Below are positions 1-31,155 of a stretch of 64,000 bases of DNA, piece by piece; position 1 is the first letter of the stretch; each line of letters opens with the position of its first letter. The DNA comes from Neoechinorhynchus agilis (lineage: Eukaryota > Animalia > Acanthocephala): positions 11,113,480-11,177,479 of the forward strand of contig CM121342.1 of the NCBI GenBank assembly GCA_051530055.1. Reading direction: 5' to 3'. The position numbers and the translations under genes are program-made. A model generated the notes under the pieces. That model worked only from the letters and a program-made list of their open reading frames with translations. It searched no databases and was not told where the DNA came from.

Positions 1-1262
1 GGAACTTCCATCCCATCAGGCATTATTTTTAATAAAGAGTGCCCTGTTCCTTCCGAAGTTGCTGTACAAGTTGCGTACAGCGCCCTTCTTCAAACATCAA
101 CACTCCTTGACGAAAATTGATGATAATTTAAGGAGGTGTCTCGAAGGGATTCTAAATATCCAACTGTCGGATGAGGCATGGAGACAAGCTTCCTTGCCTG
201 TATCTTCCGGCGGTTTGGGTATTCGTAAAACAGCTGATGTTGCGATTCCGGCCTTTTTAGGTTCCTATGAGAACAGCCGATAGTTGGTACCTAAATTGCT
301 CGAAAAAGAGTTTTTACTTGATGAAAATTTTAAAGAGGCGGTCTTCGAATTTTGTCGCATTACGCAGTGCGATGAAGTTACTTTGAGAGGCAAGAGACAG
401 TCAGTTTGGGATAAACCTTTAATCACGCGAGTTCACAACTCAATGCTTTCTGACGCGCGTGATGAGGTGACCCGAGCTCGATTGTTGGCGGTCTCTTCGA
501 AGGAATCCGGTGCCTGGCTGAACGCAGTTCCGATTCCTTCGATCGAAAATTTACTGTCGGACGAAACAGTAAGGATCAGATTGTCCTTACGACTAGGCTC
601 CCGATTTGTGCCCCACACTACTGTCGTTGTGGGGCCCTTGTGGATTCTTTGGGTAGACACGGTCTCGTTTGTCGCCAGTCCGGTGGCAGGTATGCTCGCC
701 ACGCTGAGATTAACTCGGTTATTAGTCGGGCCTTAAACACGATACACGCACCGAATCTGCTCGAACCGAGTCACCCCTGCAGACTCGACGGTCGAAGACC
801 GGATGGGTTAACGGTGTTCCCGTGGCGAGAAGGGAAATCCCTTCTCTGGGACGCTACTTGTGTGGACACCCTTGCTCTGTCCAATCTAAGACATTCCTCA
901 AGGCGCGAAGGAGGTGCTGCAATTGCCGCAGAGGAACGTAAGCGCGGGAAATACGCGGAGCTCTTGAGGGCACATCACTTCGTCCCTTTCGGCGTTGAGA
1001 CGCTCGGTGCCTTCGGTGCTGAGGCCAAGAACTTTACGGCGGATCTTTCAAGGAAGATGAGGATCGCAACCGGAGACCAAAGAGCAGGAACGTTCTTCCT
1101 GCAAAACATAGGTCTCGCGATCCAGCGCGGCAACGCTGCAAGTGTCCTTGCGACGGTTCCGAATGGTAAAGAGATGGATCTGGGAGGCTAGTAGATACAT
1201 GAGACTTGATTTGGTGTGAGCTTAGTTTTTGTACTTTTTTAATGTTTTTGATTAAAATAAAA
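1..1262 (+). mobile_element. Mirror-image 3' half of the CRE-type non-LTR retrotransposon at 3373-7036 (RT thumb, CCHC finger, RLE endonuclease, A-rich tail)
   Basis: ORFs 59-283, 284-736 and 640-1191 are identical to 4352-4576, 3899-4351 and 3444-3995. They carry RPDG, WDATCVDT and IQRGNAA motifs, and an AATAAAAAA tail lies at about 1257-1264. Confidence 0.92.
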
Positions 1263-2299
1263 AAGGGAGTGCAATTCAGTAAAAAACGAGTGAATACCGC
1301 GACCCTGGATCAAGCCATTAAAAGACGGGGGAATAATTTTTTTGCTTTCCAGGAAGCTGATTAGTCTGGAATTGATGATTTTCTCGAAGAGGGAAATTAT
1401 TGGATTTTATCCGTATGTGAGAAGGGATACTGATTTTTGATTTAACTTTGGGGATAATAATTTTCCTGGCAATATTAATCTCGATTAAGTCATTTATATT
1501 GATTTTGTCATAAAAATTTTCAGAGAAACAGATCTTATTCTCTTCGAAGACTAATGAAAAACTTAAGGGGGAGAAACAAGAAAAGTTATTTGCCCTAGGA
1601 GGATTAATTTTCCAGAATTTTTAAAGCTCGGCAGTAGTGAAGTTCCAACTAAAATGTTTATCAGTGAAGGAAGACAAAGGTGGTTCGACTACTGCTGGTT
1701 AAGAAATTGTGCCACTCCAATTTACAGCCAAATATTTCCAAGAAATAAATATCCGCTTAAGAATTTTATTCCAAAATTATTTAGTGAACGCTGACACGGA
1801 TAAAAGTCGCTTTTTATCCCGAGCGAGGGAATCATAATACACCGTAGAAAAGAATTTGGAAATACCATCCTTCTGGAGGGTCACATCATTTCTCAAATTG
1901 GCAAGTATATAATATTTATCAAAAAAATTTGCTTGTTTAGATTTTTATTATTCATTACAGATTCATACGTTATGATTGTTCGGCAGCTTCCTTGATGGCC
2001 GCAGCATTGCCGTGTTGGATCGCCGCACTGATTCGCTGCAGCAGGAAGCTGCGGGGCATCCTTTTGGTTTTATTAAAAATACAATAAAACTCTTTGAGTC
2101 TTAGCTCCCAAAATGGTGAGGATAAGAAAACAAATTGTCCACCTTTTTCAATCTTTCAAAAGTTCTGGAAAATAGAAGTTCTTGTTTTAAGCCAACGTAA
2201 ATCACGGATGGAGAAAGTGGAAATACGTCGCTCGTATTCTATTGATGCATAAAATTAAATGATTTGCCTCAAACTTAATTTTTACGTTGTCCGATTTTT
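1263..2299 (-). mobile_element. Mirror copy of the APE-LINE ORF2 remnant and the small CRE 3' fragment (palindrome left arm)
   Basis: Reverse complement of 2336-3372. Confidence 0.75.
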
Positions 2300-2335
2300 G
2301 AAACATCTTTTCGTAGGCCTACGAAAAGATGTTTC

Positions 2336-3372
2336 AAAAATCGGACAACGTAAAAATTAAGTTTGAGGCAAATCATTTAATTTTATGCATCAATAGAATA
2401 CGAGCGACGTATTTCCACTTTCTCCATCCGTGATTTACGTTGGCTTAAAACAAGAACTTCTATTTTCCAGAACTTTTGAAAGATTGAAAAAGGTGGACAA
2501 TTTGTTTTCTTATCCTCACCATTTTGGGAGCTAAGACTCAAAGAGTTTTATTGTATTTTTAATAAAACCAAAAGGATGCCCCGCAGCTTCCTGCTGCAGC
2601 GAATCAGTGCGGCGATCCAACACGGCAATGCTGCGGCCATCAAGGAAGCTGCCGAACAATCATAACGTATGAATCTGTAATGAATAATAAAAATCTAAAC
2701 AAGCAAATTTTTTTGATAAATATTATATACTTGCCAATTTGAGAAATGATGTGACCCTCCAGAAGGATGGTATTTCCAAATTCTTTTCTACGGTGTATTA
2801 TGATTCCCTCGCTCGGGATAAAAAGCGACTTTTATCCGTGTCAGCGTTCACTAAATAATTTTGGAATAAAATTCTTAAGCGGATATTTATTTCTTGGAAA
2901 TATTTGGCTGTAAATTGGAGTGGCACAATTTCTTAACCAGCAGTAGTCGAACCACCTTTGTCTTCCTTCACTGATAAACATTTTAGTTGGAACTTCACTA
3001 CTGCCGAGCTTTAAAAATTCTGGAAAATTAATCCTCCTAGGGCAAATAACTTTTCTTGTTTCTCCCCCTTAAGTTTTTCATTAGTCTTCGAAGAGAATAA
3101 GATCTGTTTCTCTGAAAATTTTTATGACAAAATCAATATAAATGACTTAATCGAGATTAATATTGCCAGGAAAATTATTATCCCCAAAGTTAAATCAAAA
3201 ATCAGTATCCCTTCTCACATACGGATAAAATCCAATAATTTCCCTCTTCGAGAAAATCATCAATTCCAGACTAATCAGCTTCCTGGAAAGCAAAAAAATT
3301 ATTCCCCCGTCTTTTAATGGCTTGATCCAGGGTCGCGGTATTCACTCGTTTTTTACTGAATTGCACTCCCTT
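2336..3372 (+). mobile_element. Degenerate APE-type LINE ORF2, upstream part (linker and RT N-terminus)
   Basis: About 3235-3358 translates as IISLFEKIINSRLISFLESKKIIPPSFNGLIQGRGIHS, the typical LINE RT N-terminal block. It continues at 7037 after removal of the CRE insert. Assignment of 2336-2576 to this LINE is weaker. Confidence 0.7.
2577..2693 (+). mobile_element. Heavily 5'-truncated CRE-type 3' end (mirror at 1942-2058, minus strand)
   Basis: Translates RSFLLQRISAAIQHGNAAAIKEAAEQS*, the RLE C-terminal motif, followed by AATAATAAAAA. Confidence 0.75.
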
Positions 3373-6300
3373 TTTTATTTTAATCAAAAACATTAAAAAA
3401 GTACAAAAACTAAGCTCACACCAAATCAAGTCTCATGTATCTACTAGCCTCCCAGATCCATCTCTTTACCATTCGGAACCGTCGCAAGGACACTTGCAGC
3501 GTTGCCGCGCTGGATCGCGAGACCTATGTTTTGCAGGAAGAACGTTCCTGCTCTTTGGTCTCCGGTTGCGATCCTCATCTTCCTTGAAAGATCCGCCGTA
3601 AAGTTCTTGGCCTCAGCACCGAAGGCACCGAGCGTCTCAACGCCGAAAGGGACGAAGTGATGTGCCCTCAAGAGCTCCGCGTATTTCCCGCGCTTACGTT
3701 CCTCTGCGGCAATTGCAGCACCTCCTTCGCGCCTTGAGGAATGTCTTAGATTGGACAGAGCAAGGGTGTCCACACAAGTAGCGTCCCAGAGAAGGGATTT
3801 CCCTTCTCGCCACGGGAACACCGTTAACCCATCCGGTCTTCGACCGTCGAGTCTGCAGGGGTGACTCGGTTCGAGCAGATTCGGTGCGTGTATCGTGTTT
3901 AAGGCCCGACTAATAACCGAGTTAATCTCAGCGTGGCGAGCATACCTGCCACCGGACTGGCGACAAACGAGACCGTGTCTACCCAAAGAATCCACAAGGG
4001 CCCCACAACGACAGTAGTGTGGGGCACAAATCGGGAGCCTAGTCGTAAGGACAATCTGATCCTTACTGTTTCGTCCGACAGTAAATTTTCGATCGAAGGA
4101 ATCGGAACTGCGTTCAGCCAGGCACCGGATTCCTTCGAAGAGACCGCCAACAATCGAGCTCGGGTCACCTCATCACGCGCGTCAGAAAGCATTGAGTTGT
4201 GAACTCGCGTGATTAAAGGTTTATCCCAAACTGACTGTCTCTTGCCTCTCAAAGTAACTTCATCGCACTGCGTAATGCGACAAAATTCGAAGACCGCCTC
4301 TTTAAAATTTTCATCAAGTAAAAACTCTTTTTCGAGCAATTTAGGTACCAACTATCGGCTGTTCTCATAGGAACCTAAAAAGGCCGGAATCGCAACATCA
4401 GCTGTTTTACGAATACCCAAACCGCCGGAAGATACAGGCAAGGAAGCTTGTCTCCATGCCTCATCCGACAGTTGGATATTTAGAATCCCTTCGAGACACC
4501 TCCTTAAATTATCATCAATTTTCGTCAAGGAGTGTTGATGTTTGAAGAAGGGCGCTGTACGCAACTTGTACAGCAACTTCGGAAGGAACAGGGCACTCTT
4601 TATTAAAAATAATGCCTGATGGGATGGAAGTTCCTTCGTACGCTTGCAGAGCAATTCGACTCTCGGCGCTATTTGGAGGATCTCTTGAGGTATATTTTCA
4701 TTAAAAACGCAACTACCCAGAAGAGACAGTTGAGCACGCGAAATTATTTTGATGTTAGGTACTAGCTGCGTAAAGCTGTTGAGGATCTCAGTTTGACTAG
4801 CGGCGTTTTCTGCATTCATCACAAACAGCTCACATTTCGAGGTATTAAGCTCAACGCCGAGCTTGGCAGCTTCCCTCATGACGACCTCCAAATCTCGCAA
4901 CACCACGGAGGGAGACCCACCGAGTGTTGCATCGTCCAAATACCAAGCATAAAACTTGGATTGGAGCGAATGAGCGATCGGGTTGACGGCAAGAGAGAAA
5001 CCGATAGGACCGAGAGGATCACCTTGTTGGACACCTCGTTGAGACCAGATGATACGGTCGTTGAAAAGAAGAGGAGTCTCAGTCCCATAGGCGTTGAGGA
5101 AATACTAGTATGCTTCCGGTGCGTAAGTTGCGACAGCTTCTAGAAGCGCACTGCGATCAACACAGTTGAAGGCGTTTCGGAAGTCGCACTTGAGCACAAC
5201 ACAGGACTCTGAACTTTTTGTGACAAAGGAGCGAAGTGCGTGCACGACAGCTTCGGCTCCGCAAGGCGTACAGCAACCGGGTTGTACCGGGCGGAAAAGT
5301 TCGCTAAGATCAACTGCAAGACGTTTGCAAAGAATCTTTGCTGCAAGACGCCGAAGTGTCGATCCCATAGCGATGGGACGAATCCCACCGTCTTTCTTTT
5401 TAAGGGCACAGAGTGAAGCACCGAAGAACAACTGAATTGCGACGGGAGGCAATTCGTCACCAACGAACAGATCAACGAGGCGTGACAATCCATTCGAAAG
5501 GCTCTGAGCGGCTTCACCGACGGAGAAGGACAACATGTCCTTGAGGTGTTGAGGCCTAAGCCCGTCTAGCCCATGACCGGATCCACTAGCAAGGGAGGAT
5601 ATCGCTGAATTGAGTTCCTTTACAGAGCAGGGAGACTTCGAGGTAGCCGCGAGGCAAGTCGGAATTTTCGGTGGTTCCGATGGAGGATGTTTTTGGTTCA
5701 AGGTTTTGAGAGTTTCCTCGTTAACCTGGGTAAAAACTTCAGAGGAGGAAAGGATGCGAACAGCTCCCCGGATGTCACCATCCGCAATTTTGGAAGAGGC
5801 ACGTTCCCCTATGGATCTAGTCGAAAAATTACTGTGTGTAGGTTGTTCTGTAGGTCCGCGATCGACAGCTCGAATTGCGTCCGAAAAGAGTTGATCGAAG
5901 GAAGCGATTCTTTCTTTGATTGAACTGACCAACGACCCCTCCGAACGGTCACCAGCGCGAAGAACCAGCCTGGTAAAAGCGAAGAGACGTGTCCATGCAA
6001 TGTCAGACCCGTTTTCTAAGCAATCCCTTAGCAAAGCACCAAATGACTTCGTCGTCTGATACCGAGCGCCCTTTGGGATCCGTTTCAGGACGTTCCTGGG
6101 CAGAACGCGCAAGATATCAGGGAATTTCGTGGGAATGACCTGAGGCGCTGGGATATTCCGAGGAGGTAGTGGGTTCGGGATGACAGATCTTGGGGGCGGG
6201 AGGAACCAGAACAGCGGGATCTGAAGGGACCGTGTATCCGAACTAACAAGGATTTGTTAAGGCAAAAACAACCACCGCATTCCGAACAAAAACCTTTCGG

Positions 6301-7036
6301 AGAAGAAGTGGCCCGGAGGTTCGATACCCCGGCCTGTTGTTGTAAAGCCGTTGCATCATCATCATTGAACTCGACGTCGTCCAGTTGTCGTGTGATGGGC
6401 ACAGGGTAATCCAACTCAATTGATGACGTCACAGTCGGCACGGCAGAATCCGAGAGGTCAACGTTCAGCTGCATTGTGTAAAGAAAGACCTCAAAAAAGA
6501 CCGACCGAGACCACACAACGAATTCTCAGCTAGCTTATCGGTCCGTAAGCAAAGAACGCTGTCAAGAACTGCTAATTCACTATATTCGATAAAATTTCCT
6601 GTGGTGTCACACTCGACACGGCAGAAAGCAATAAAAAACTGCGTCTTAAGAAATTCTTTAGCAGGATCGCTCAGAAGTGGCAGAAATGGATTCAGCGATA
6701 TCTTAAACCCCAAATCGCGTCTTAATAGTTCAAATAAAACCTTCTTTTCGAGAGCGAGTTAGGGCAAGGATTAAAAGGCTGTGCTCAGGCGAACGTCGCA
6801 ATAGTTAGAGCTCGGACCTTTCCAATTTAGATCGTCTTGATACCCGGTGAGAATTTTGTCCACAAACCTGAGGAGTAGAAAATCTCCAAGAATAACGATC
6901 GTTAGAGATTTTTCCTGCGATTATTGTTTAAATACCCCTATTGTTGATATTAAAACTTCTTGGTGACTTGATAGATACGCTCTTATATTGATTGATGTTT
7001 CAATATCAATAATCAAGGTAGTTGGTCTCAAAATGT
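3373..7036 (-). mobile_element. Near full-length CRE-clade (RT + restriction-like endonuclease) non-LTR retrotransposon, about 3.7 kb, with 7-bp TSD CTCCCTT
   Basis: TSD at 3366-3372 and 7037-7043; poly-T on the + strand at the 3' end. Domain order is N-terminal C-x2-C-x14-H-x6-C finger, RT (RPIAMG, DFRNAFN, QGDPLGP, YLDDATL), CRC-H-C finger, then RPDG...WDATC...K..KY RLE. Clade call from motif style. Confidence 0.85.
3444..6516 (-). pseudogene. Disrupted RT-RLE polyprotein of the CRE-type element
   Basis: Segments 6085-6516, 5105-6112, 4352-4939, 3899-4351 and 3444-3995. In-frame TAG stops lie at 5105-5107 and 4352-4354, and there are two frameshifts (about 6100; and about 4030, restored by one extra C). 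Confidence 0.9.
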
Positions 7037-10621: not shown

Positions 10622-12391
10622 CGACAAATTCTCCTGAAAGATTTGCTAATAAAAGCTTTATCGCCTATTTTATGGTGAGACGACTGGCGGCCATTGGTCG
10701 GATTTTTTAATTGTCACTAAGATTTTATGATTCTTTAACACTATAAAAACAACAATCGAGTTCATCTTTATTTCGATAAAAATGTATTGTTGCCATTCTA
10801 CCCACTAACTAATGATTTTGATTCCACTGAACGTTCAAAAGTATTTTTAACTTTTGCATACACTGGTTCAATTAATTCTTTATGTTTTTTGTTTGCCACA
10901 TGATTAATCATCTTTTCTAATATTTCAATGATTTGTGATGCTTGAACTTCTTCAGCTGTTATTTCCTTTGCCATTATTTCCTGGAACATTCGTCGAATCC
11001 AGTCTAGATTCCATATCCTGTAATCCTTATAAAGTCCAATACGTAATCCTCTGCAATAAAAGGACAAATCATGATTAATTGGTTTAGGTGGTTCTTCGGT
11101 CCTTTCAATGGCCTTGGAACTTTTCTCACTCTGCGATGATCCTGCAGATTTAACAATCTTCTCTTTTCTGGAAAATGATTTCCTGGCTTCACAATTAAAG
11201 ACGTATTTCCGGCGCTTTCGAGCAGCGCTAACGACTTCCTTCTGATCCAATGATTCAGACATTTTCGCTGATTTGTCGTCGACGCTTTGGACAGCGCTAG
11301 GTTCTTCGCTCATTGGAAATGTGCGCTTTCTCTTCAGCGAGGCTTTCAACTCCTCAGAACTTTTTGCTGCGGCTAATCTTGCCTCTCGGATTGTTTTGCC
11401 GAATTTGTCGGCCAATTTCTGTATGAGGTATTTATACCGAATGTTTTTTGTGTTATTGTTCATCTGCAACAACATCGGAACTACTCCTGCGCGCTGGATT
11501 TCCTCCGCGGAGAATTCTCCATAGATCATTTCTCCGAATACTCGGCATACCCAATCTCCGCTGATTATTGTAAAATTTTTGTCAATGCCGAAAGAGAGTT
11601 TATAGGCAATCTCTCCAAGCATTCCATTTCGCGTCGGCGTTTCTCCTCTTAAATTATCCCTTTTAGTTTTATCTTGTATCAATATTTTATCTTTATTGTT
11701 TACCGGCTTTCTGCTAATTTCAGCCGAGCCTTTAGAAATCTTTTCGTCACCACCTTCAGCCTTTGAATCAGCCCTTGTTTGACATTCACTGATGTTTGAG
11801 GATAATCTAACTTTGACTTCATGACTCGTATCCCGTGCCGGACGTTTGATTTCTGTATTTTCAAATGATTCTTCATTTTTTCTTTTGCGGTTCGCTTCAT
11901 TTTTATCTTCGGTTGAAACTTTCGTCATATCTGGAGCTGATTGAACGTTCGCAGGTCGAGTTCTCGTTTCGTCTTCTTTGCCGATATTCGTTTCTTGAGC
12001 CTTGTTCATCGATAGGACTTTTATGTGAGTGATATGATCTCAGTTTGCTTCATTCACGTTGCGCTTTTGAGACGGGAAATCACATTGTGTTTGTGTTTTC
12101 TCAATAGTACATATTTGCTTGATTTTCCATATTTAATTGGCAAATAATAGAAAAACTAATTACAAAAATAATTCAACGCTCAAGACGGTAAAAAACAATT
12201 CCAAAAGTTTGCACAGAAAAAATTGATTCTTTATCACAGTATTATCCTGTGGACTAAATAAGCTCGGGCAACGGGTTCGCCTTTGTTAACTTGAGCCCCA
12301 TAGAAAGCGTACCACTGTTTTTCCCAATGGAAATTTAAAACTAATTCTGGCTTTGTTATTCCGTCCATCGCTTAAACTGAACAAGGCGATT
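10622..12391. repeat. About 1.8-kb direct segmental duplication unit, copy 1 (copy 2 at 14781-16558; partial copy 3 at 20416-20484 + 21816-21906)
   Basis: Both copies start GACAAATTCTCCTGAA and end ACAAGGCGATT, and both contain the 403-aa ORF plus its upstream region. Confidence 0.92.
10798..12009 (-). CDS. 403-aa protein with two tandem LEDGF-IBD / TFIIS-N-like helical domains and charged, NLS-rich linkers (copy 1)
   Basis: Intact ORF. Residues about 130-207 and 315-392 align to each other without gaps (L.L..G..K...I...DW..R.F.E....E..AEE.Q......L..M.N...N...K.LI...K...T). The second matches the LEDGF IBD as recalled (NLD; EIT vs QVT; LEK vs LKK; YAKVKNTF vs YNKFKNMF). Confidence 0.65.
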   Translation of the reverse strand: MNKAQETNIGKEDETRTRPANVQSAPDMTKVSTEDKNEANRKRKNEESFENTEIKRPARDTSHEVKVRLSSNISECQTRADSKAEGGDEKISKGSAEISRKPVNNKDKILIQDKTKRDNLRGETPTRNGMLGEIAYKLSFGIDKNFTIISGDWVCRVFGEMIYGEFSAEEIQRAGVVPMLLQMNNNTKNIRYKYLIQKLADKFGKTIREARLAAAKSSEELKASLKRKRTFPMSEEPSAVQSVDDKSAKMSESLDQKEVVSAARKRRKYVFNCEARKSFSRKEKIVKSAGSSQSEKSSKAIERTEEPPKPINHDLSFYCRGLRIGLYKDYRIWNLDWIRRMFQEIMAKEITAEEVQASQIIEILEKMINHVANKKHKELIEPVYAKVKNTFERSVESKSLVSG

Positions 12392-12599
12392 TGAGATAAG
12401 GTATTGAAGAAGGTATAGTTGACTAATCAAGTTCCCAATATAGAGGATCTTTATTAAGTACGCCACGCGATTCTATGCTGAAGGCTAAAATAATCTAAAG
12501 AATCCGTGGTTTAATTAACGGTTATTAAGTAATGATTTTTAAGGTGCTGAACAACTTCTTTGATTTTATTAACATTCACCGGTTACACACGCAACAACA

Positions 12600-14452
12600 A
12601 AATTTTTCAACAATCACCATCGTCCACGAAGAAGAGGCATCTCGCTCCCCTCAGTGGTCGCGACCACACTCGCTGCGTTTCCTCTTTGGATCGCGAGACC
12701 AATGTTTTAGCGCAGGAAGGCACCAGCTCTTGTATTTCCTGTCTTGGCCTGGAGTCTACTCGATAACTACTCCGTAAATTTAAGTGCCGAGCTATCGAGC
12801 GCACCAAGAGTCTAAACTCCAAAGGGTACAAAAACGTGTCACTTACTTAATTTTCTATATTTCGCCACCTTTCGTTCCTCCGCGGCAGTAGCCGCTCCCC
12901 TGGGGACTGCACCACAAACCTCCTGTTACTTGCCGCGAACGTGTCTACACACGTGGCGTCCCAGAGAAAACATTTGCCTTCTCGCCACGGGAATAGGGTG
13001 ACGCCATCCGGACGACGACCATCGAGTCGGCACAGATTACTTAGTTCTGAAATGTTTGGGATGTTCACCGTATTCAGGGCACTCGAAATTACGTCGTAAA
13101 CGGCCCCCTGACTTGTTGCAAACAAGGCAATGTCTCCCCAATGGATCCACGATCATTCCACGCTGGCAACGATGTTCGACACAAATCCGTAGTTCTAATC
13201 TGAGGGAAACTCCGATCCGAACTGCTTCGTCTACGAGGAGTGTTCCTGCGAATGCAATGGGTAGGGCTTCTAACCATGCTCCCGATTCTCTTGTAGAGAC
13301 TGCCAGCAATTTAGCCCGGTCGACCTCGTCGCGAGAGCCTGAAATTAGAGAACTGTGAGCTCGGGCGACTAAAGATTTATCCCAGATAGACTGCTTCAGG
13401 CCATTGTTCTGCATTTAGGCGTTTATTCAACAAAAAAACCGCGAACTAACAATCTTGCAAATGGACGCGAGCACGTACATGTCCATACACACGATCAGTA
13501 TATGTGAAATGCGCGCTGTCGTCGTCACGTTCGCCATCACAGCCATTCCCGGGAACTTGGTTGTAACCCGTCTTCTCCCACCATTCCTTGATCGCTACTA
13601 GAAATTCGTCCGCTAAACAGAACTTGGTTCTCAACATAGGTTTTACCAGATCCCGGCTCCCTTCGAATGATACTGTTTTTCGAATACCTAAGCCACCGAA
13701 TGTCACCAGGCCTCGTCTGATAGCTGGACATTTAAAATGTGCTCGAGACACGCCTTCACAATGTCATCGAGCTTCTTTAACTTATCGGCGTGCTTGAAGA
13801 AGGAAGCCATGCGCAGTTTATAAAGTAGTTTCGGGATGAAGACGGTATTCTTGATCAGGAATAGAGCCCCGTATGACGAAAGTTCCCGCACTCTATCGCA
13901 CGCATCGTGATGTTCGGGAGTGGATGGCCGATTTCATTTTCCACATTTGAATCAAAAGCGCAGCTCCCTAGAAGACTCAGCCGGTCTAGAGTGATCAAGA
14001 AACTTTCCTCAAAGGATACGAGGCGTCTTTTGATTACCGCAGTGAGGGACGCCCCCGAACTATCGCCAGCGGAAAGTACTAGTCTGGGGAAAGCAAAGAG
14101 CCGTGTCCAAGAGGAGTCAGAATTTTGCTCGAAGCAGTCCAGCAGAAGTGTGGTGAATCCTTTAGCTACTAGATATCGTACTCCCGGCGTCATCGGGGAG
14201 CGTCGACGGATTTTTTGGTGTTGCAGGTTGAAGCGATCGCGGGATTTGACCAGATCCCAACAACGTGATTTGACGGCCCATGAATGCGCAAAACCCCCAA
14301 TTTCGCGATTGAAAAAGAATCTAAACAAACGGGGCGGTGTCCAGGTAGCGTTGGGTGTTTCTTTGGTCTTTTCATTTGGTTCGCTTCGCTCGGGTACGGC
14401 ATCGGTGTCGTCGGTGGTGGAGGCGGCATTGCGGAATATCGTTGAAGACCGA
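12600..14452 (-). mobile_element. Internally deleted, degenerate CRE-type element (RT core missing)
   Basis: The N-terminal finger (PVCLDSF...RIHGP) and WTRLFAFPRLVL run directly into RLSLLGSC, with no QGDP/YLDD block. GGLGIRK, ESGAWL, RPDG, WDATCVDT and IQRGNAASV follow across frameshifts. Confidence 0.85.
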
Positions 14453-14728
14453 AAAATCGGACAACCTAAAAATTAAGTTGTAGGCAAATCATTTAATTTT
14501 ATGCATCATTAGAATACGAGCGACGTATTTCGACTTTCTCCGTCCGTGATTTACGTTGGCTTAAAACAAGAACTTCAATTTTCCAGAACTTTTGAAAGAT
14601 TGAAAAAGGTCTCCAAAGTTGTCCATTGGTTATTGTTTTTCCGGTAGGACAATTTGTTTTCTTGTCCTCAAAATTTTGGGAGCTAAGACTCAAAGAGTTT
14701 TATTGTATTTTTGATAAAACCAAAAGGA
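14453..14728 (+). repeat. Diverged copy of the segment next to the palindrome centre (2336-2576), with an extra ~40 nt
   Basis: AAAAATCGGACAAC ... CCAAAAGGA is shared at both loci. Confidence 0.85.
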
Positions 14729-14959
14729 CGCATTGTTACCTTGAAACATATCAACTAACCCACACGAGTTTAGGAGTAAAGACAAATTCTCCTGAACGAT
14801 TTGTTAATGGAAGCTTTTTCGGCTATTTTATCGTTGGACCACTGACAGCTATTGGTTGGATTTTCTAATTGTCGCTATGATTTTAACTGTGAATCTTTTA
14901 CACTCTAAACACGAAAATTGAGTTCATCTTTATTTCGATAAAAATGTCTTGTTGCCATT

Positions 14960-16171
14960 CTACCCACTAACTATTGATTTTGATTCCACTGAACTTTCAA
15001 GGGTATTTTTAACTTGTGCATAAACTGGTTCAATTAATTCTTTATGTTTTTTGTTTGCCACGTGATTAATCATCTTTTCTAATATTTCAATGATTTGGGA
15101 TGCTTGAACTTCTTCAGCTGTTATTTCCTTTGCCATTATTTCCTGGAACATTCGTCGAATCCAGTCTAGATTCCATATCCTGTAATCCTTATAAAGTCCA
15201 ATACGTAATCCTCTGCAATAAAAGGACAAATCATGATTGATTGGTTTAGGTGGTTCCTTGGTCCTTTCAATGGCCTTGGAACTTTTCTCACTCTGCGATG
15301 ATCCTGCAGATTTAACAATCTTCTCTTTTCTGGGAAATGATTTCCTGGCTTCACAATTAAAGACGTATTTCCGGCGCTTTCGGGCAGCGCTAACGACTTC
15401 CTTCTGATCCAATGATTCAGACATTTTCGCTGATTTGTCGTCGACGCTTTGGGCAGCGCTAGCTTCTTCGTTCATTGGAAATGTGCGCTTTCTCTTCAGC
15501 GAGGCTTTCAACTCCTCAGAACTTTTTGCTGCGGCTAATCTTGCCTCTCGGATTGTTTCGCCGAATTTGTCGGCCAATTTCTGTATGAGGTATTTATACC
15601 GAATGTTTTTTGTGTTATTGTTCATCTGCAACAACATCGGAACTACTCCTGCGCGCTGGATTTCCTCCGCGGAGAATTCTCCATAGATCATTTCTCCGAA
15701 TACTCGGCATACCCAATCTCCGCTGATTATTGTAAAATTTTTGTCAATGCCGAAAGAGAGTTTATAGGCAATCTCTCCAAGCATTCCATTTCGCGTCGAC
15801 GTTTCTCCTCTTAAATTATCCTTGTTGGTTTTTTCTTGCATCAATATTTTATCTTTATTGTTTACCGTCTTTCTGCTAATTTCAGCCGTGCCTTTAGAAA
15901 TCTTTTCATCACCACCTTCAGCCTTTGAGTCAGCCTTTATTTGCCATTCACTGATGTTTGAGGATAATTGGACTTTGACTTCATGACTCGTATCCCGTGC
16001 CGAACGTTTGATTTCTGCATTTTCAAAAGATTCTTCATTTTTTCTTTTGCGGTTCGCTACATTTTTATCTTCGGTTGAAACTTTCGTCATATATGGAGCT
16101 GACTGAACATTCGCAGGTCGAGTTCTCGTTTCTTCTTCTTTGCCGATATTGGTTTCTTGAGCCTTGTTCAT
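14960..16171 (-). CDS. 403-aa double IBD-like protein (copy 2)
   Basis: Intact ORF of identical length; I count 26 amino-acid differences from copy 1. Confidence 0.65.
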   Translation of the reverse strand: MNKAQETNIGKEEETRTRPANVQSAPYMTKVSTEDKNVANRKRKNEESFENAEIKRSARDTSHEVKVQLSSNISEWQIKADSKAEGGDEKISKGTAEISRKTVNNKDKILMQEKTNKDNLRGETSTRNGMLGEIAYKLSFGIDKNFTIISGDWVCRVFGEMIYGEFSAEEIQRAGVVPMLLQMNNNTKNIRYKYLIQKLADKFGETIREARLAAAKSSEELKASLKRKRTFPMNEEASAAQSVDDKSAKMSESLDQKEVVSAARKRRKYVFNCEARKSFPRKEKIVKSAGSSQSEKSSKAIERTKEPPKPINHDLSFYCRGLRIGLYKDYRIWNLDWIRRMFQEIMAKEITAEEVQASQIIEILEKMINHVANKKHKELIEPVYAQVKNTLESSVESKSIVSG

Positions 16172-16558
16172 CGATATTACTTTTATGGGAGTGATATGAT
16201 CTCAGTGTGCATCATTCACGTTGCGCTTTTGAGACGGGTAATCACATTGTGTTTGTGTTTTCTCAATAGTACATATTTACTTGATTTTCCATATTTATTG
16301 AAGTGACAAATAATAGAAAAACTAATTACGAAAATAATTTAAAGCTCAAGACGGTAAAAAACAATTCCAAAAGTTTGCATAGAAAAAATGGATTCTTTAT
16401 CACAGTATTATCCCGTGGACTAAATAAGCTCGGGCAACGGGTGCGCATTTGTCCACTTGAGCCCCATAGAAAGCGTACCACTGTTTTTCCCAATGGAAAT
16501 TTAAAACTAATTCTGGCTTTGTTATTCCGTCCATCGGTTAAACTTAACAAGGCGATTA

Positions 16559-17000
16559 TATATATAACGGCGTGGCCGAATACCCATTATTGTTATTGAG
16601 ACTCACCATTTCATATTCACCCCTTTGCCGACTGTAGACTTGGTGGGGGTCCGCAAAAACGTTATCCGTTATAACCACCTTATCTTCTTTATTTTCTGAG
16701 CAGTTTTCCTTCAGATTCCTTCTTTGGTGGGGGGTCAGAAAAACATTATCATCAATAACAACCTTTTTCTCCGGGTAACGTGGATATCGCACACACTCAT
16801 AACTAACTTTAGCAGGATCTTCACCCACTTCCATTCCTCTTTCTATAGAAGGTTCCTTCGCATTATCATAATCAACCTCCATCTGACCCCCTTTTCGGTC
16901 ATCCGGAGGATCGGGGTCCCATAAATCTCGATCATTCGAACTTTGTGTCAGAGCGCAGTTTTTTAACAAAAAAAATTGCGCGACATGTGATTAATGTACC
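16559..17000 (-). mobile_element. 442-bp non-autonomous LINE-like mini-element with 11-bp TSD CAAGGCGATTA
   Basis: TSD at 16548-16558 and 17001-17011; LINE-family head (TCACA..TCGCG..TGCGCT..GATCCTCCGGAT); short ORF with DPDPPD; (TA)n 3' tail. Confidence 0.65.
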
Positions 17001-17018: not shown

Positions 17019-19194
17019 CACAAAAAAACTGTGCGCTATTTTTTGTTTAATTTTGCGCTCTGATAAAATCAAAGAAACAGCCTAGTAAGCAGCCGATATC
17101 TTCTCTGAAAGGTTAGTATATTGGAAGATATGGCCACTACACTTTCCGGTTCAAGTTTTCCTCTGGTTTCGGACGTAGTTATTTCCCCCATGTGTGATTG
17201 TGAAGTTAGGAATGATTGTGCCCCAGTTTCTAACATTATTAAACGTCCAACCAAGAAGGATGATTTTGTTGTGAAGATCTCAAAGGAAGCTTTGGGTACC
17301 AGATCACCTGCTGAGCTTACTCGAACCTATTTTTCACGTTATTTGGTCCCTGGCGGCAAAGCTTCTCTTAGGCATTTCAACATCAAGAGGTTATTCGCTG
17401 CCAAGTTTCATATTATCTTCTGTTTTTTCGATGCGGAAGGGAGGGACTTATTTTTCAAAATGTTGACGGGCTTGGATATTACGTTTGTTGATCTTTCAAG
17501 AAGGGTGACCATTAGAATGTTTAATGCGCCTCAAAAACTGGATGCAGAAGGTTTTCGATTGGTGGAGAAGGAATTAGGTGTGAAACCGATGAAATACCTA
17601 TTCAGTCCAAATACGGTTTCAGCATATGCACTTCTTTGTTCTGCCCCGGTGGAGACTGCAGACATATTGGCTTCCTCAGGTCGTGCTATCATGTCACACT
17701 GGGTTACCCTCTACAGGCATCAGGAATGAATTTACGACTTCAACCTGACTATATGCCAAAAATGCTCTGTATGGGGACATACAGAATCAGGCTGCAAGTC
17801 TTCGCCGAGATGCATCTTTTGCGCTGGCTCCCACCATGAAAGGGACCGTAAGGCACAGGATAATCCTCTCTGCGCAAATTGTGGAAAGAGACACCCAGCT
17901 TTTGCTAGGAAGTGCAAGTTTGCACATTCCTACCTCACACAATACTTCATGGATACAGAGAATAGTAAGGGCTGGGCTACTTACAATCCTCATCCAGTTC
18001 ACAGTGCTGTTAACCGTATGAACAATATTAAATTTGTTCAAAAAATTCTTATTCAGCTTGACTGGATATAACCTTTTTATACAAAGCTCTAGAGGAGCTA
18101 AAAATTCCTCTGAATCTTATATATAAAATTAATTACTTACTTGAATCAAATTCCTTTTATTGTGAGGTGGATCCCTCAAAAACCAAATTCTTTTTCCGTT
18201 TGGGGGTCCCCAAGGCTCTTAAGTATCCCCTACTCTTTTCCTTATCTGCCTTATTTTTATCTTTAAGAAATTGAAACTACCCAGGGGTATCTTTCCTCCG
18301 ATATATGCAGACGATATCTTTCTCTGCAACATTCAAGCAGCTCTGAGTATCCTTAGCTCAGAGTTGAAATTGGCTAATCTTGCCATCAATGCCAATAAAA
18401 CTTTTTTTATCCTCCTCACTAACTCGCTCTCTTCTAGGAAAGTTTTAATCAATAATTTAATTAATTACCACAATTTTAACTCCTCCAACATTAAGAAATT
18501 TACCAGGGTTCTAGGAATCGACTTCCCCTCCAAGACATTTAGATTTTTAATTAATTCATCGATTAATAATACCTTTCTAAAAATCAAATATGTTCTTAAT
18601 AGTGCCAAATATCTTGATTTGAATTTTAACATTATATTACCCGTTCTAAAAGCTCTCATAGGAGGCTCTATCTGTTTTTTCGGGAGAGGTCGCCCTCCTG
18701 AACTTAGGTTTTCCTTCTTTTTTAGATGTTTTAATAAGCTTCATAAACTTATCAAATTATAATCTTATCCATGAGCCTCTTTTATCTTTCCTCTCACGCT
18801 TATTTTTGGGAAAAATCTTATTCTTCCCTTCATTTTCTAATAAAGGTAAGTTCTTTATATCTAATGAACAGGTATTCTACTTTCCTTCTCCTTCTAACCC
18901 TAACTTCAACGCACAATGCTCCAACACAATTCGATTGGAATTCAATGATGCACACACTTTTTTTACAATAAGTAATTTCTTAATGGATAAAGATAGGAAA
19001 TGGTTAATGGCAAGAAAGTAATACTACCAGGATAAAAATTAATCTGGTCTTTTGGTCCTCCGAGGCTGTCTGAGATCGACCTAATACCTGAGGTCCAATA
19101 GAGCAGACGAAGGACCAACGATAACTTCTAGACCAACGAAAAACCCTAATTGTTATCTTACTAGTTGTATGGCCGTGTTTAATAAATAAATAAA
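17019..19194 (+). mobile_element. Internally deleted LINE (ORF1 + RT 3' part + (TAAA)n tail) with 11-bp TSD ATTAAGTAAAT
   Basis: TSD at 17008-17018 and 19195-19205; ORF 17121-17729; GGPQGS remnant at about 18200; IYADDIF and VLGIDF in 18271-18762; AATAAATAAATAAA tail. Confidence 0.8.
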
Positions 19195-22749: not shown

Positions 22750-24545
22750 TGGTTGTTTTCTGGCGAAGAAATAAAAATGATTTTATTTTAAAATCCGATA
22801 TTTCGGCACAATCTTGTGCCTTTATCAAGGTCTAAAAAATCATGTGGGGATTGATCAATATTCACTGTCCCAAGATTGAGCCTAAAGTCCGCCTTTTTTC
22901 CTTCAATTGTTTCCACTTGACCGATGAATATTGCCTCCATAATCACACGGTCCCATTTTGTTTCACTACGTGCCAAAATGGTAGCGTAGTCAATGCCATT
23001 AAGTGGTCCTGTTGGGCAAAATGGTTGAATGTTGCTAAACTGGCATCAGCACCTCTTCCTCAGAGCATATTTATGTTCCTTAATTATCCTTTGTATATTG
23101 TTGGTTTAGCCCAGGCTTGGCCAGTTATTGCATCGCATTCTGCATATTATACGATAACAGCAAGGACATTGGCTAACATGTTAAGAAACTTATTGTCTCA
23201 GGATAAGCACACAGTATCGTCAGGTGTGGAGTTCATAGGGAGATTGAAGGTGCACGCAAATGCAGAATATAGAACGGTTTCTGCCTATGTCGAGTCCCTA
23301 TTAACGAAAGTACCATTGAATTCAGCGATAAATCTTGCGATTCACATACTTCAACGCAATGTAGAAGGACGGAATTTAACTGAATCTGAATGGAAGGAAC
23401 TCTTATACATGTGCACGAGGAACTCGAATTTCAATTTCGAAGTTAAGAGCTACGATCAAGTTGGTGGATCGTTAATGGGGAGTCCTCTTGCCCCAGTTCT
23501 CATCGAATTGTTCATGCGTGATTGGGAGGCTAAGTATGTTTTCAGCCTACCGGGTGTGAAATTCTGGCAGAGAAACGTTGGCGATACTTTTATCTTAGTC
23601 GATGAAACCACAGAACCGGAATACTTCTGCCGCATGCTAAACCCCTAGCACGGCAACAAGTCGGCGAATAGCAATGCGATCCCTTTTTTAGACGTGTTGA
23701 TAACGCGATAAGAAGTAGAGTTAGCAACCACTGTTACAGAAAGATTGGTACACCGACTGACATTGCCCTCCCTTTCATCACAATGACACCAATTATATAT
23801 ATAATAACTAGGATAAAGTCGCTGTTTGATCGTGCCTGCAACTATTGTTCCAACAAGGATTCCCTCAACAACGGGTTACAATTTTTTAGGAAAATGCTCA
23901 AAGGAAAGGGCTATCCAATCGACTTGATAAGAAGAGCTATTTGCGGGGCCTTCTATTCAAAGAAAACTTTGTACCAAAGTCAAAGCAAAACGCCCTCACA
24001 AGTGCACCATTCGTCGACGAGGAGTTCTTCACTGCAATTAACAACCTGACCAAAGAAGGCACGTCAAAAGACATGGAGTGTTGTATTTGCACCAAGAAAA
24101 ATAAGCAACTGAACTCCACGGTGAAGAAACGTGAAGAACATCAAGGCAAAGGAGTGGTGTACAAAATTCCTTGCACTGAAAGGAGAATTCAGGAACATAA
24201 ATATGCTCTGAGGAAGAGGTACCGATGAAAGTTCAACAATACCCAACCATTTCGCCCAACAGGACCACTTAATGGCATTGACTACGCTACCATTTTGGCA
24301 CATAGTGAAACAAAATGGGACCGTGTGATTATGGAGGCAATATTCATCGGTCAAGTGGAAACAATTGAAGGAAAAAAGGCGGACTTTAGGCTCAATCTTG
24401 GGACAGTGAATATTGATCAATCCCCACATGATTTTTTAGACCTTGATAAAGGCACAAGATTGTGCCGAAATATCGGATTTTAAAATAAAATCATTTTAAT
24501 TTCTTCGCCAGAAAACAACAAATTTGAACAATTCAATCTCCGAAC
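22750..24545 (+). mobile_element. Penelope-like element (RT + GIY-YIG remnant) with an inverted copy of its 3' end at the 5' side; 12-bp TSD GGTTTTAAGTAC
   Basis: PLE RT motifs VESLLTKVP, MGSPLAP, WQRNVGDTF and RIKSLFDRA; GVVYKIPC...RIQEHK. 22753-about 23100 is the reverse complement of about 24180-24520. TSD at 22738-22749 and 24546-24557. Confidence 0.88.
24441..24476 (+). ncRNA. Minimal type-I hammerhead-like motif at the PLE 3' end, U3-A8 variant (also 22795-22830 minus, 30641-30676 minus; decayed at 39970-40005 and 52952-52990)
   Basis: CC-TTGATAA-A-GGCACA(AGAT)TGTGCC-GAA-ATAT-C-GG: stem II of 6 bp, palindromic ATAT stem III, AUC cleavage triplet and CC/GG stem I. Confidence 0.55.
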
Positions 24546-24709
24546 GGTTTTAAGTACATTTTGTCATCTCACAGATAAGCGCTCTTCGTTGATGACGGGC
24601 GTGATTCGCAAGTTCACTTGAGAAAGTTCATCATCTTTGAGTCACGTTTTGCTTGCAACTCAGATCTTGAACTTCTTTGTAAAAAATTCTAACGGCGCAC
24701 TCTTTAATT

Positions 24710-25720
24710 ATGATGACCCTGACAGAAAATCCAATGGTGTTTGTCGATGATCTCATCAACCGTCACAAAATAGTTTTGTTCAGCAAGAGTTACTGTCCTT
24801 TCTCTCTTCTGGCAAAGAATATTTTGAAGCATCTTCAGTTTAAGAACGTCGAAATAGTCGATTATGATCAATTCAAGCAGTGGAAGGACATTCAGGATTA
24901 TCTCGTTAATATCTACGATTCGAATCTACCAGCACCCAGGGTTTTCTTAAATGGGAAGTGCATAGGAGGCGGCGTTGAAATTCTTTTTGGAGATAATCAG
25001 CTAAATCGAACACTGATCGAGGAAAGTCTAAATGAGAAAAAGGAGAATGCAAAAAAATACGTCGATTTATTGCTTAAAATTCACAAGGTTGTAATGTTTA
25101 GTAAGAGCTATGACACGTTTTCGGACGTAGCTAAGAGCGTATTAAATCGATATCAAATCGAAGATTTAAAAATCTGTGAATTGGATCAAATCGAAAACTG
25201 TAGTGAGATAAAAGATTACATAGCCAGTATTTGCGATGACAACCGAACAATCCCGAGAATATTTCTCAATGGAAAATGTATTGCCGGAGGATTGGATCTT
25301 AATAAAATGAATACTCAAGGCAAATTGATTCCGATGTTACGCGAAGGTGGCGTTAAAATGAACGAAGAAATCGCAAACAAACACGAACTTGCTCAGAACT
25401 CGGAATGTTCAATGGAATTTGCGAAACAATTCGTTGATAATCTAATTAATAATCACAAGGTAGTTGTGTTCAGCAAGACGTATTGCCCGTTTTGCATTCT
25501 GGGCAAAAATGTTCTTGGCCTTTACAACATTAAAGATATTAAGACGGTTGAAATAGAAGATATGCCGGAATGCAATCAAATTCAAGAATATTTGGGGACG
25601 TTGTGTAATGGAGAATCAACTGTTCCTCGCGTTTTTGTCGAAAGGAAATTCATCGGCGGAGGATCGGAAATGGAGAAATTTCATAATTCTGGAAAATTAA
25701 AGGAGATGCTCAAACTTTAA
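24710..25720 (+). CDS. Three-domain class-I-type glutaredoxin (336 aa), copy 1
   Basis: Three repeats of (V/L)FSK(S/T)Y...(T/P)(V/I/A)PR(V/I)F...IGG; active-site positions read CPFS, DTFS and CPFC; intronless intact ORF. Confidence 0.92.
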   Translation: MMTLTENPMVFVDDLINRHKIVLFSKSYCPFSLLAKNILKHLQFKNVEIVDYDQFKQWKDIQDYLVNIYDSNLPAPRVFLNGKCIGGGVEILFGDNQLNRTLIEESLNEKKENAKKYVDLLLKIHKVVMFSKSYDTFSDVAKSVLNRYQIEDLKICELDQIENCSEIKDYIASICDDNRTIPRIFLNGKCIAGGLDLNKMNTQGKLIPMLREGGVKMNEEIANKHELAQNSECSMEFAKQFVDNLINNHKVVVFSKTYCPFCILGKNVLGLYNIKDIKTVEIEDMPECNQIQEYLGTLCNGESTVPRVFVERKFIGGGSEMEKFHNSGKLKEMLKL

Positions 25721-25909
25721 TTGTTTAACCGTTTGAAAGGTGATCTTGCGTATTTGGAATTTTCGCTGATAAAAATTATACTTTTGATTCACTGTTTATT
25801 TTTGCTCCGATAACAACAATGTGTCCAAGTTTACTAAAATTCAAATGTTCCTTCGTAGTCCCGATTTAAAAAATATAACGTTAAATATCATTTTTACGGC
25901 AAAAAATAA

Positions 25910-28922: not shown

Positions 28923-29394
28923 TGTTAGAATTTTATCGTAGTAATTTAAAACTAACATCGGTTACCTAGGAAACACTTTTAAAAGTAAAATGTAGTTGAC
29001 ATTTTAACAACGCAACTGCTAAACAATAAACTTTCTAAAAAAATTATGAACGCAATTTTTCCATGGAAAGAGAGCGAATCGCAAAACGAAAGGGATAAGT
29101 TAGATGAATAAGTGAATTGGAATAGTAAGCGTTTATTTATATATTTTAGATTTTACTTTGATCATTCAAGGCTCCGCCGATTTCAAGAGAAAATGTTACT
29201 AAATGCATCTACACAGTTCGCTGATTTCTCCGAATAGCGTGTGTTTAACAAACGGACTACGAAGGAACATTTGAATTTTAGTAAACTTGGACACATTGTT
29301 GTTATCGGAGCAAAAATAAACAGTGAATCAAAAGTATAATTTTTATCAGCGAAAATTCCAAATACGCAAGATCACCTTTCAAACGGTTAAACAA

Positions 29395-30405: not shown

Positions 30406-30571
30406 AATTAAAGAGTGTACCGTTAGAATTTTTTTACAAAGAAGTTCAAGATCTGAGTTGCAAGCAAAACGTGACTCAAAGATGATGAACTTTCGCAAGT
30501 GAACTTGCGAATCACGCCCGTCATCAACGAAGAGCGCTTATCTGTGAGATGACAAAAATGTACTTAAAACC

Positions 30572-31155
30572 GTTCGGAGATTGAATTGTTCAAATTTGTT
30601 GTTTTCTGGCGAAGAAATTAAAATGATTTTATTTTAAAATCCGATATTTCGACACAATCTTGTGCCTTTATCAAGGTCTAAAAAATCATGTGGGGATTGA
30701 TCAATATTCACTGTCCCAAGATTGAGCCTAAAGTCCGCCTTTTTTCCTTCAATTGTTTCCACTTGACCGATGAATATTGCCTCCATAATCACACGGTCCC
30801 ATTTTGTTTCACTACGTGCCAAAATGGTAGCGTAGTCAATGCCATTAAGTGGTCCTGTTGGGCAAAATGGTTGAATGTTGCTAAACTGGCATCAGCACCT
30901 CTTCCTCAGAGCATATTTATGTTCCTTAATTATCCTTTGTATATTGTTGGTTTAGCCCAGGCTTGGCCAGTTATTGCATCGCATTCTGCATATTATACGA
31001 TAACAGCAAGGACATTGGCTAACATGTTAAGAAACTTATTGTCTCAGGATAAGCACACAGTATCGTCAGGTGTGGAGTTCATAGGGAGATTGAAGGTGCA
31101 CGCAAATGCAGAATATAGAACGGTTTCTGCCTATGTCGAGTCCCTATTAACGAAA
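30572..31155. mobile_element. Partial PLE copy (3' end + RT N-terminus), a direct repeat of 22753-23309
   Basis: ORFs 30634-30822 and 30688-31179 match 22788-22976 and 22842-23309 up to VESLLTK. Confidence 0.88.

Follow-up and report, generated by a model that had tools for sequence, protein, structure and literature searches.

Candidate multivalent TND-interacting motif readers: predicted tandem TFIIS N-terminal domains in a recently duplicated host gene of the acanthocephalan Neoechinorhynchus agilis

What do two nearly identical, intact genes encode that lie between remnants of retroelements on a chromosome of the acanthocephalan Neoechinorhynchus agilis? The window analysed here is a 64,000-nucleotide stretch of contig CM121342.1 (assembly GCA_051530055.1, forward-strand positions 11,113,480 to 11,177,479), and positions given without a locus name refer to it. 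A reading of the letters alone, hereafter the original prediction, had noticed two open reading frames (ORFs) of 403 amino acids (aa) and described each as a pair of integrase-binding-like domains of the LEDGF type. Both frames were confirmed: copy A spans exactly 10798-12009 and copy B exactly 14960-16171, and the two are intact minus-strand ORFs. We propose that each protein carries two divergent TFIIS N-terminal domains (TNDs), closest to that of MED26 by sequence profile and predicted structure. We consider it fairly probable that the proteins act as nuclear, multivalent readers of TND-interacting motifs (TIMs) in RNA polymerase II (Pol II) transcription, and that they are encoded by a duplicated host gene whose family is so far found only in N. 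agilis. The features of the two genes are as follows; NLS-like denotes a resemblance to a nuclear localisation signal.

10798-12009, minus strand: copy A, a single-exon intact ORF of 403 aa, annotated as a 403-aa gene in GCA_051530055.1
11878-11889, minus strand: RKRK cluster of copy A (residues 41-44), NLS-like, with a putative role in import
11356-11646, minus strand: TND1 of copy A (residues 122-218), predicted five-helix TND fold, 19% identical to the MED26 TND
11323-11334, minus strand: KRKR cluster of copy A (residues 226-229), putatively NLS-like
11206-11220, minus strand: RKRRK cluster of copy A (residues 264-268), putatively NLS-like
10804-11094, minus strand: TND2 of copy A (residues 306-402), predicted five-helix TND fold, domain modelled at pLDDT 90.9
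14960-16171, minus strand: copy B, an intact 403-aa ORF, which from codon 4 forms exon 2 of the NCBI model P0001 (ACOME3_007244, 492 aa)
15518-15808, minus strand: TND1 of copy B (residues 122-218)
14966-15256, minus strand: TND2 of copy B (residues 306-402)
10623-12391: duplicated unit of copy A, the ORF with 175 bp on its 3' side and 382 bp on its 5' side
14452-16558: the whole duplicated unit around copy B (about -385 to +1720, counted from the ATG), common to paralogs elsewhere on the chromosome

Copies A and B are recent, DNA-level duplicates of an N. agilis host gene. Their proteins align without gaps at 94% identity. The coding sequences differ at 42 of 1212 nucleotides (nt), with 14 synonymous and 26 nonsynonymous codon differences and a dS of 0.056. 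The homology extends beyond the reading frames, as 10623-12391 aligns with 14781-16557 at 94.6% identity across 1777 bp; at the nucleotide level, the coding sequences diverge by 3.5%, the 5' flanks by 5.5% and the 3' flanks by 14.3%. Both copies are genes in the BRAKER annotation of GCA_051530055.1, which used mRNA-seq hints.

Each protein contains an internal repeat. Residues 122-218 and 306-402 form a gapless alignment at 27% identity, with a local score of 120 as compared to 36.8 +/- 6.6 (maximum 79) in 500 shuffles (z about 12.7), and the repeat is therefore far beyond chance. This bears out the two gap-free repeats with basic linkers of the original prediction, the repeats being about 85 aa long. 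The basic clusters lie at residues 41 (RKRK), 226 (KRKR) and 264 (RKRRK), and the protein has an isoelectric point of 9.5. Its layout is IDR, TND1, IDR, TND2, where IDR stands for a probably disordered region. In a full-length AlphaFold2 (AF2) model, folded helical domains span residues ~129-215 and ~315-400 at pLDDT 70-88, with the rest below 50; the regions outside the TNDs are probably disordered. Already with this full-length model, TNDs rank at the top of a Foldseek search against the PDB.

A sharper model was obtained for TND2 of copy A from an alignment of 17 N. agilis domain instances (A3), a profile that contains no MED26 sequence. This domain model reaches pLDDT 90.9 and pTM 0.78 and comprises five helices (positions 10-19, 30-42, 47-53, 55-63 and 66-96). 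Structure prediction followed by Foldseek, a check that the original prediction had suggested, thus yields a five-helix bundle whose top 33 matches in the PDB are all TND structures. The best of these is the MED26 TND 6zv3 (probability 1.00, TMq 0.71, TMt 0.76, rmsd 2.1 A), and below it follow the integrase-binding domains (IBDs) of LEDGF and HRP2, IWS1/Spn1, TFIIS, PPP1R10 (PNUTS) and Elongin A. When the A3 profile was compared with PDB sequences, the human MED26 TND was recovered at E=3.4e-7 and 5.7e-7, without gaps over profile positions 9-90 (82 positions). The PPP1R10 TND follows at E=0.13, and the next match that is not a TND has an E-value of 0.0057 across only 46 residues. Profile match and predicted structure concur, and the repeats therefore appear to be divergent TNDs, nearest to that of MED26.

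Single sequences give little of this signal. The window proteins have no match to PF08711 at E<=10 in Pfam, 1 of the 17 family domains reaches an E-value of 0.046, and a single-sequence phmmer search against the PDB returned no match. The family seems to be too divergent for PF08711 to be detected from one sequence at a time. No other Pfam domain reaches threshold in the family proteins, where only sub-threshold noise is seen. Pox_VLTF3 (E 0.01-0.03 over 40 residues) and HEAT_ECM29, which appear in the Pfam scan at E<=10, belong to this noise and were set aside. A Foldseek search of a viral structure library gave no credible match.

Are the domains of the LEDGF type? The TND/IBD fold superfamily, which the wording integrase-binding-like implies, is recovered by Foldseek; the assignment to LEDGF is not supported, MED26 being closer by both sequence and structure. 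The human LEDGF IBD sequence was validated as exact against PDB chains before it was scored. It reaches 9.7 bits against the family profile (E ~7, with two indels), as opposed to 31.5 bits (E ~1e-6) for MED26, and LEDGF is absent from the matches of the A3 profile in the PDB at E<=10. Of the two Pfam families named for checking, PF11467 matches no family member at E<=10, and PF08711 stays below its cutoff (best score 16.2 bits, cutoff 20.6). The original prediction had further recognised a counterpart of LEDGF D366 in a GLYKD loop. GLYKD is present in the C-terminal repeat, but its Asp column (22) holds Asp in only 6 of 17 family domains. A conserved acidic column lies two residues before it (Asp in 11 of 17) and corresponds to D20 of MED26. 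HMMER places D366 itself on a non-acidic family column, in an alignment to LEDGF that is of low confidence. The absence of a clear PWWP domain, by contrast, stands: Pfam detects none in either ORF, in the NCBI model of 492 aa with its putative upstream exon of copy B, or in those further family members that were scanned.

This upstream exon is the only candidate for a missing part of the gene, and its lack of a PWWP leaves the tether-less architecture unrefuted. The NCBI model P0001 (492 aa) joins the ORF of copy B to a 92-aa upstream exon across a predicted intron of 444 nt:

16607-16882, minus strand: putative exon 1 of copy B, 92 aa, acidic, with two KVVIxDNVFxxPHQ motifs
16163-16606, minus strand: predicted intron of the P0001 model, 444 nt, GTGAGT donor, AG acceptor, phase 0

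Neither a PWWP nor any other Pfam family was found in 16607-16882. A sequence 91% identical to the exon lies upstream of the paralog at locus L003, on the same strand. Exon 1 is missing from copy A, where the homology to copy B stops within the intron. The 92-aa ORF is found at 16607-16882 (minus) in the window and at 6315-6587 (plus) in L003; its distance to the ORF with two TNDs (2-TND) is 436 bp in the former and ~3.3 kb in the latter, where an insertion seems to separate the two. It may be a true first exon or a separate small gene.

How widespread is this architecture? A profile built from the four window domains was run with HMMER, exhaustively, against 1.84e9 representative proteins and found no relatives outside N. 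agilis. It returned five clusters at 50% identity, all from N. agilis, with 1-5 domain copies per protein. The family so far comprises at least 14 genes with 1-5 TNDs per polypeptide, distributed as follows:

2-TND family (the window genes, P0001-P0004): 2 TND copies
P0005: 5 TND copies
P0006: 4 TND copies
P0007: 3 TND copies
P0008: 1 TND copy

P0005 has five sister genes, each more than 90% identical to it. The only close relatives of the window proteins in the databases are N. agilis hypothetical proteins, all encoded on the same 16.4-Mb chromosome, CM121342.1. On this record the window was matched to about 11.05-11.12 Mb, in reverse orientation, with the two genes near 11.10 Mb. The remaining 2-TND paralogs lie at 10.67-10.72 Mb, and all five 2-TND copies are therefore found within ~430 kb. 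Three of the five, namely copy A, copy B and the one at L003, are intact. When the 17 domains are arranged in a neighbour-joining tree, those of P0005, P0006 and P0007 group by position (1-1-1, 2-2, 3-3, 4-4), and the fifth domain of P0005 groups with the third of P0007. TND1 and TND2 of the window proteins form a derived sub-branch together with the single TND of P0008. The positional grouping would therefore place the poly-TND array before the gene duplications, an order that is indicative only, as the tree carries no bootstrap support.

Two members have unusual gene models. In P0008 (ACOME3_002643), the single TND is preceded by eight tandem 86-aa repeats (residues 1-690), with the motif KNLPT/KNPPT recurring every 86 residues from position 8 to 610; weak Pfam matches in this region are repeat noise. 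The P0007 model joins a C-terminal Argonaute/Piwi tail (…IPAPCYYAHHVAFRARHY…) to a 3-TND protein by predicted splices. The locus (L004 260-547 and 727-2185) lies near the end of contig JBMGUZ010000028.1, with the Piwi tail as a separate ORF. Given the contig-edge position and the predicted splice, the fusion is probably a run-on of two adjacent genes.

The genome in which the family resides is compact (46.2 Mb, with 13,655 BRAKER genes predicted using mRNA-seq hints) and highly reduced, with many core genes missing (PMC12690905). The original prediction did not recognise the architecture from described proteins. This agrees with the literature: the text of a TND review makes no mention of tandem or multiple TNDs (PMC9987994), and a full-text search for tandem or multiple TNDs or IBDs found no paper. 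The family represents a known module in an undescribed, iterated architecture, and would be the first multivalent TND layout that we could trace in the literature.

Selection acts on the domains. Nei-Gojobori estimates of dN/dS from six pairs of genes fall into these ranges:

TNDs: dN/dS 0.18-0.31
Linkers (IDRs): dN/dS 0.37-0.96
Whole gene: dN/dS 0.26-0.50

In each of the six comparisons, the TNDs have a lower ratio than the linkers, also in pairs with a dS of 0.12-0.18, which shows that purifying selection is concentrated on the TNDs. Between copies A and B, the whole-gene value is 0.50.

What would such a protein do? TNDs are non-catalytic scaffolds, which read short, disordered TIMs by means of two shallow, hydrophobic pockets and of 3-5 residues that make up a basic patch (PMC9987994). 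The TIMs reside in Pol II elongation and initiation factors, and the TND is the fold most enriched among transcription-elongation regulators, where each characterised protein carries one (PMC9987994). From this established role, a nuclear multivalent TIM reader would be the most likely mechanism of the window proteins. The protein is probably nuclear, since its three NLS-like basic clusters could provide entry into the nucleus. Each TND would then dock one TIM, and a single molecule could bridge or cluster a pair of TIM-bearing factors, or gain avidity for one factor with several TIMs. TIM binding and a role in transcription would be expected from this established role. Of the three options in the original prediction (a decoy or restriction factor against mobile-element enzymes, an element-borne accessory gene and a bivalent elongation adaptor), the adaptor is the one that we would favour. 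Everything beyond fold and homology we infer, and the family is so far drawn from a single species.

Several observations weigh against this proposal. The TND structure is predicted, not solved, and Foldseek gives E-values no better than 0.05, a modest level that is to be expected of a helical bundle of ~80 residues. No family member reaches the gathering score of PF08711, the best (P0007) scoring 16.2 bits against the cutoff of 20.6. In MED26, the pair R61/K62 binds SEC and TFIID, and its mutation abolishes SEC binding (PMC13634412). In the corresponding columns, no more than 3 of 17 and 1 of 17 family domains, respectively, have a basic residue, and the window proteins hold N/N in TND1 and I/N in TND2. 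A TIM-binding basic patch is therefore hypothetical, and ligand specificity is probably not that of MED26. Two of the five 2-TND copies are broken, one by W333* in the second domain and one by a frameshift in IDR1, and the family is therefore turning over. TND1 (11356-11646 and 15518-15808) shows no synonymous difference between copies A and B where ~4.6 would be expected (Poisson P ~0.01). This suggests a gene-conversion tract, which may inflate the apparent conservation.

The family has a signature of its own, M60-x-x-N63-x-x-N66 together with a near-invariant K79. Columns 14, 16, 32, 79 and 81 are mostly basic. The proteins do not appear to be MED26 orthologs. This identity was considered and ruled out by the absence of the Med26 middle and C-terminal domains, the loss of R61/K62 and the presence of 2-5 TNDs per protein.

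The surroundings of the genes raise the question whether a host gene or a mobile element is at hand. The original prediction placed the two ORFs among decayed elements. Decayed non-LTR (long terminal repeat) elements with reverse transcriptase (RT) fragments are indeed close by, at 4355-6256 (minus) and 18223-18759 (plus), as is a piece resembling the tail of a long interspersed nuclear element (LINE). The same window, however, holds ordinary host genes: two for glutaredoxins and one each for a PWI/RRM protein, a bZIP protein and an SNF transporter. Two repeats adjoin the TND genes:

12941-13393: LINE-tail-like fragment lying between the two TND genes, with 65% identity to 398-869 and 3766-4237, which adjoin an RT fragment; context
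14452-14731, minus strand: dispersed ~280-bp repeat within the 3' flanking sequence of copy B, with 83% identity to 2056-2299 and 2336-2579; not part of the gene

The ~280-bp repeat starts with GCATCCTTTTGGTTTTAT… and also occurs at L001 2409-2700 and near LINE sequence at the centre of a palindrome described below. It may be a short interspersed nuclear element, a miniature inverted-repeat transposable element or a LINE 3' tail.

All five 2-TND copies have in common a unit that reaches from about -385 to +1720, counted from the ATG, with one 5' junction and three unrelated upstream contexts. The copies at L001 form a 2953-bp tandem array. A seemingly 5'-truncated fragment at L001 shares its outer flank with the L003 copy and is therefore a segmental duplicate. 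No RT, integrase, endonuclease or gag-like domain was found on the duplicated unit, and no TND ORF is present on the RT-bearing LINE copies of the window. The edges of the 2-TND and 5-TND units show no poly-A, terminal inverted repeats (TIRs), direct repeats, target-site duplications (TSDs) or fixed termini. A retroposed gene or transposon was considered and rejected: poly-A, terminal repeats, TSDs and fixed ends are lacking, and the L001 fragment is a segmental duplicate. The window genes are best read as products of segmental and tandem duplication.

The 5-TND genes occupy units of ~2.4 kb at three loci (L005 7872-10302, L006 7872-10302 and L007 7752-10181), and the unit is 99.96% identical between CM121341.1 and CM121343.1. 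All three loci have an identical sharp 5' junction, after which the unit begins with CTACGAACAATAAATC…, unrelated DNA upstream and neighbouring repeats in shuffled order. No transposable-element (TE) genes, TIRs or poly-A were seen there. The 5-TND subfamily looks somewhat more mobile than the 2-TND copies.

Other explanations of these genes have to be weighed against a duplicated host gene for a TIM reader. The proteins might be a TIM decoy or sponge, analogous to PWWP-less LEDGF IBD fragments, in which TNDs without an anchoring domain titrate TIM-bearing factors; such a negative regulator could counter mobile-element enzymes. This would account for the lack of any detected chromatin, Mediator or Pol II anchoring domain in the ORF or in putative exon 1, and would suit a multi-copy family with fast turnover, in which dN/dS of the linkers is raised up to 0.96-1.58 in IDR2. 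LINE fragments lie nearby, and the gene model of one member (P0007) is fused to a Piwi/Argonaute tail. However, no positive evidence for a decoy or restriction factor emerged: there is no link to any integrase or transposase, the features by which LEDGF contacts integrase are not conserved, and the TNDs show ordinary purifying selection and nothing that would indicate an arms race. The basic IDRs could tether the protein to nucleic acid, and the Piwi fusion, at a contig edge and with a predicted splice, is probably a run-on model. We regard a decoy as unlikely, if the least unlikely of the alternatives. Should the fold relationship to the LEDGF IBD and the possible upstream exon of copy B instead point to a conventional HDGF/LEDGF-family gene with an overlooked PWWP exon? 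This we hold to be very improbable. The putative exon contains neither a PWWP nor any Pfam family, and copy A has no upstream exon altogether, as the homology stops in the intron. The family profile fails to detect LEDGF, a PWWP is seen in 0 of 14 family members, and two to five TNDs per protein are not the architecture of HDGF proteins.

A different kind of alternative concerns the gene as such. The ORFs might be functionless young duplicates, open merely because the duplication is recent (dS ~0.056), in a family that is decaying. Two of the five 2-TND copies are broken already, the window copies differ with a whole-gene dN/dS of 0.50, and homologs are found in one species only. Yet dN/dS in the TNDs (0.18-0.31) is below that of the linkers in 6 of 6 comparisons, and TND1 and TND2 have kept the same core at 27% identity. 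The domain persists in five clusters at 50% identity, three of which show positional orthology of their domains, and has therefore been kept for long; loss of function is accordingly a doubtful explanation, which we would give little weight. Marginally less weight still falls on the possibility that the ORF is cargo or an accessory frame of a mobile unit that spreads as a discrete 2-3 kb cassette, such as a captured gene or a non-autonomous retroelement with ORF1 alone. The 5' junction (~-385) that all five 2-TND copies share despite three unrelated upstream contexts would fit such a cassette. So would the 280-bp repeat of the 3' flank, which is dispersed and also found beside LINE sequence, the 2.4-kb 5-TND unit with its near-identity on two chromosomes and sharp common 5' junction at three loci, and the RT fragments near several copies. 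The junctions nevertheless lack poly-A, terminal inverted or direct repeats and TSDs, and the 3' ends are variable, with the L001 fragment a segmental duplicate. The 2-TND copies are all confined to ~430 kb of one chromosome, partly in a 2953-bp tandem array, and the RT-bearing LINE copies of the window are without a TND ORF. No TE protein lies inside any unit, and the viral structure library gave no match. The element-borne accessory gene of the original prediction thus gained no positive evidence.

The chromosome segment is rich in very recent local duplications. Positions 1-4634 form a perfect palindrome (arms 1-2317 and 2318-4634, 100% complementary, zero spacer), which holds LINE-tail-like sequence and abuts the RT fragment at 4355-6256; the arm may extend past the window start. 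It could be a foldback artefact of long-read assembly or a real, young palindrome. An inverted duplication of 1181 nt (24681-25861 and 29254-30434, 99% identity) carries two genes with triple glutaredoxin domains, 24710-25720 (plus) and 29395-30498 (minus), whose proteins are 99.4% identical. Further inverted segments, 96% identical, are found at 22752-23092, 24179-24562 and 30555-30938. Between the two TND genes, 13858-14473 is open on both strands (205 aa on the minus and 199 aa on the plus strand) and matches no Pfam family.

A natural family with two to five TNDs and no other recognisable module would offer a test of whether TND:TIM contacts serve bridging and avidity. It could also reveal in what way the Pol II accessory network was rearranged in a strongly reduced parasite genome, and at least 14 hypothetical proteins of a fish-aquaculture pest gain an annotation. 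A bolder extension, to which we assign a low probability, is that poly-TND proteins form hubs with up to five TIM-reading modules per chain, which rewire or replace parts of the elongation network centred on MED26, IWS1 and LEDGF. The window 2-TND genes would then be a recently amplified, possibly sex- or stage-specific offshoot. This idea builds on acanthocephalan genomes having lost many conserved regulators.

Among known systems, the MED26 TND (PDB 5ODD, 6ZV3; PF08711) is the best match by sequence profile and by structure. The predicted domains share with it a five-helix bundle, a hydrophobic core and the residues D20, N27, T44 and N66, at an identity of only 9-23%. MED26 combines one TND with middle and C-terminal Mediator-binding domains, whereas the window proteins have two TNDs, and Pfam detects no Med26 middle or C-terminal domain in the family. 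The IBDs of LEDGF/p75 (PSIP1) and HRP2 (HDGFL2) belong to the same fold superfamily (Foldseek probability 0.95-1.00, TMt up to 0.72), and the window proteins resemble LEDGF and HRP2 also in the basic, NLS-like clusters of their flanking regions. Both of those proteins, however, pair a PWWP with one IBD, while the window proteins carry two TNDs without a PWWP and without a significant sequence relationship. Their alpha1-alpha2 loop has the length of that in MED26, unlike LEDGF.

Generic TNDs, as in TFIIS, Elongin A, IWS1/Spn1 and PPP1R10/PNUTS, likewise are right-handed five-helix bundles of ~80 aa in largely disordered, charged proteins (PMC9987994). The proteins discussed there pair one TND with further functional domains or complexes; in the N. 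agilis proteins, no module besides the TND can be recognised, and the TND is iterated. Tandem SH3, WW and PDZ scaffolds carry repeated motif-binding domains on flexible linkers, which give bridging and avidity. Their folds are unrelated to the TND, and the comparison is a mechanistic analogy, not homology. Like these readers of short linear motifs, the window proteins would place small, repeated peptide-motif domains on flexible linkers, an arrangement suited to bridging and avidity.

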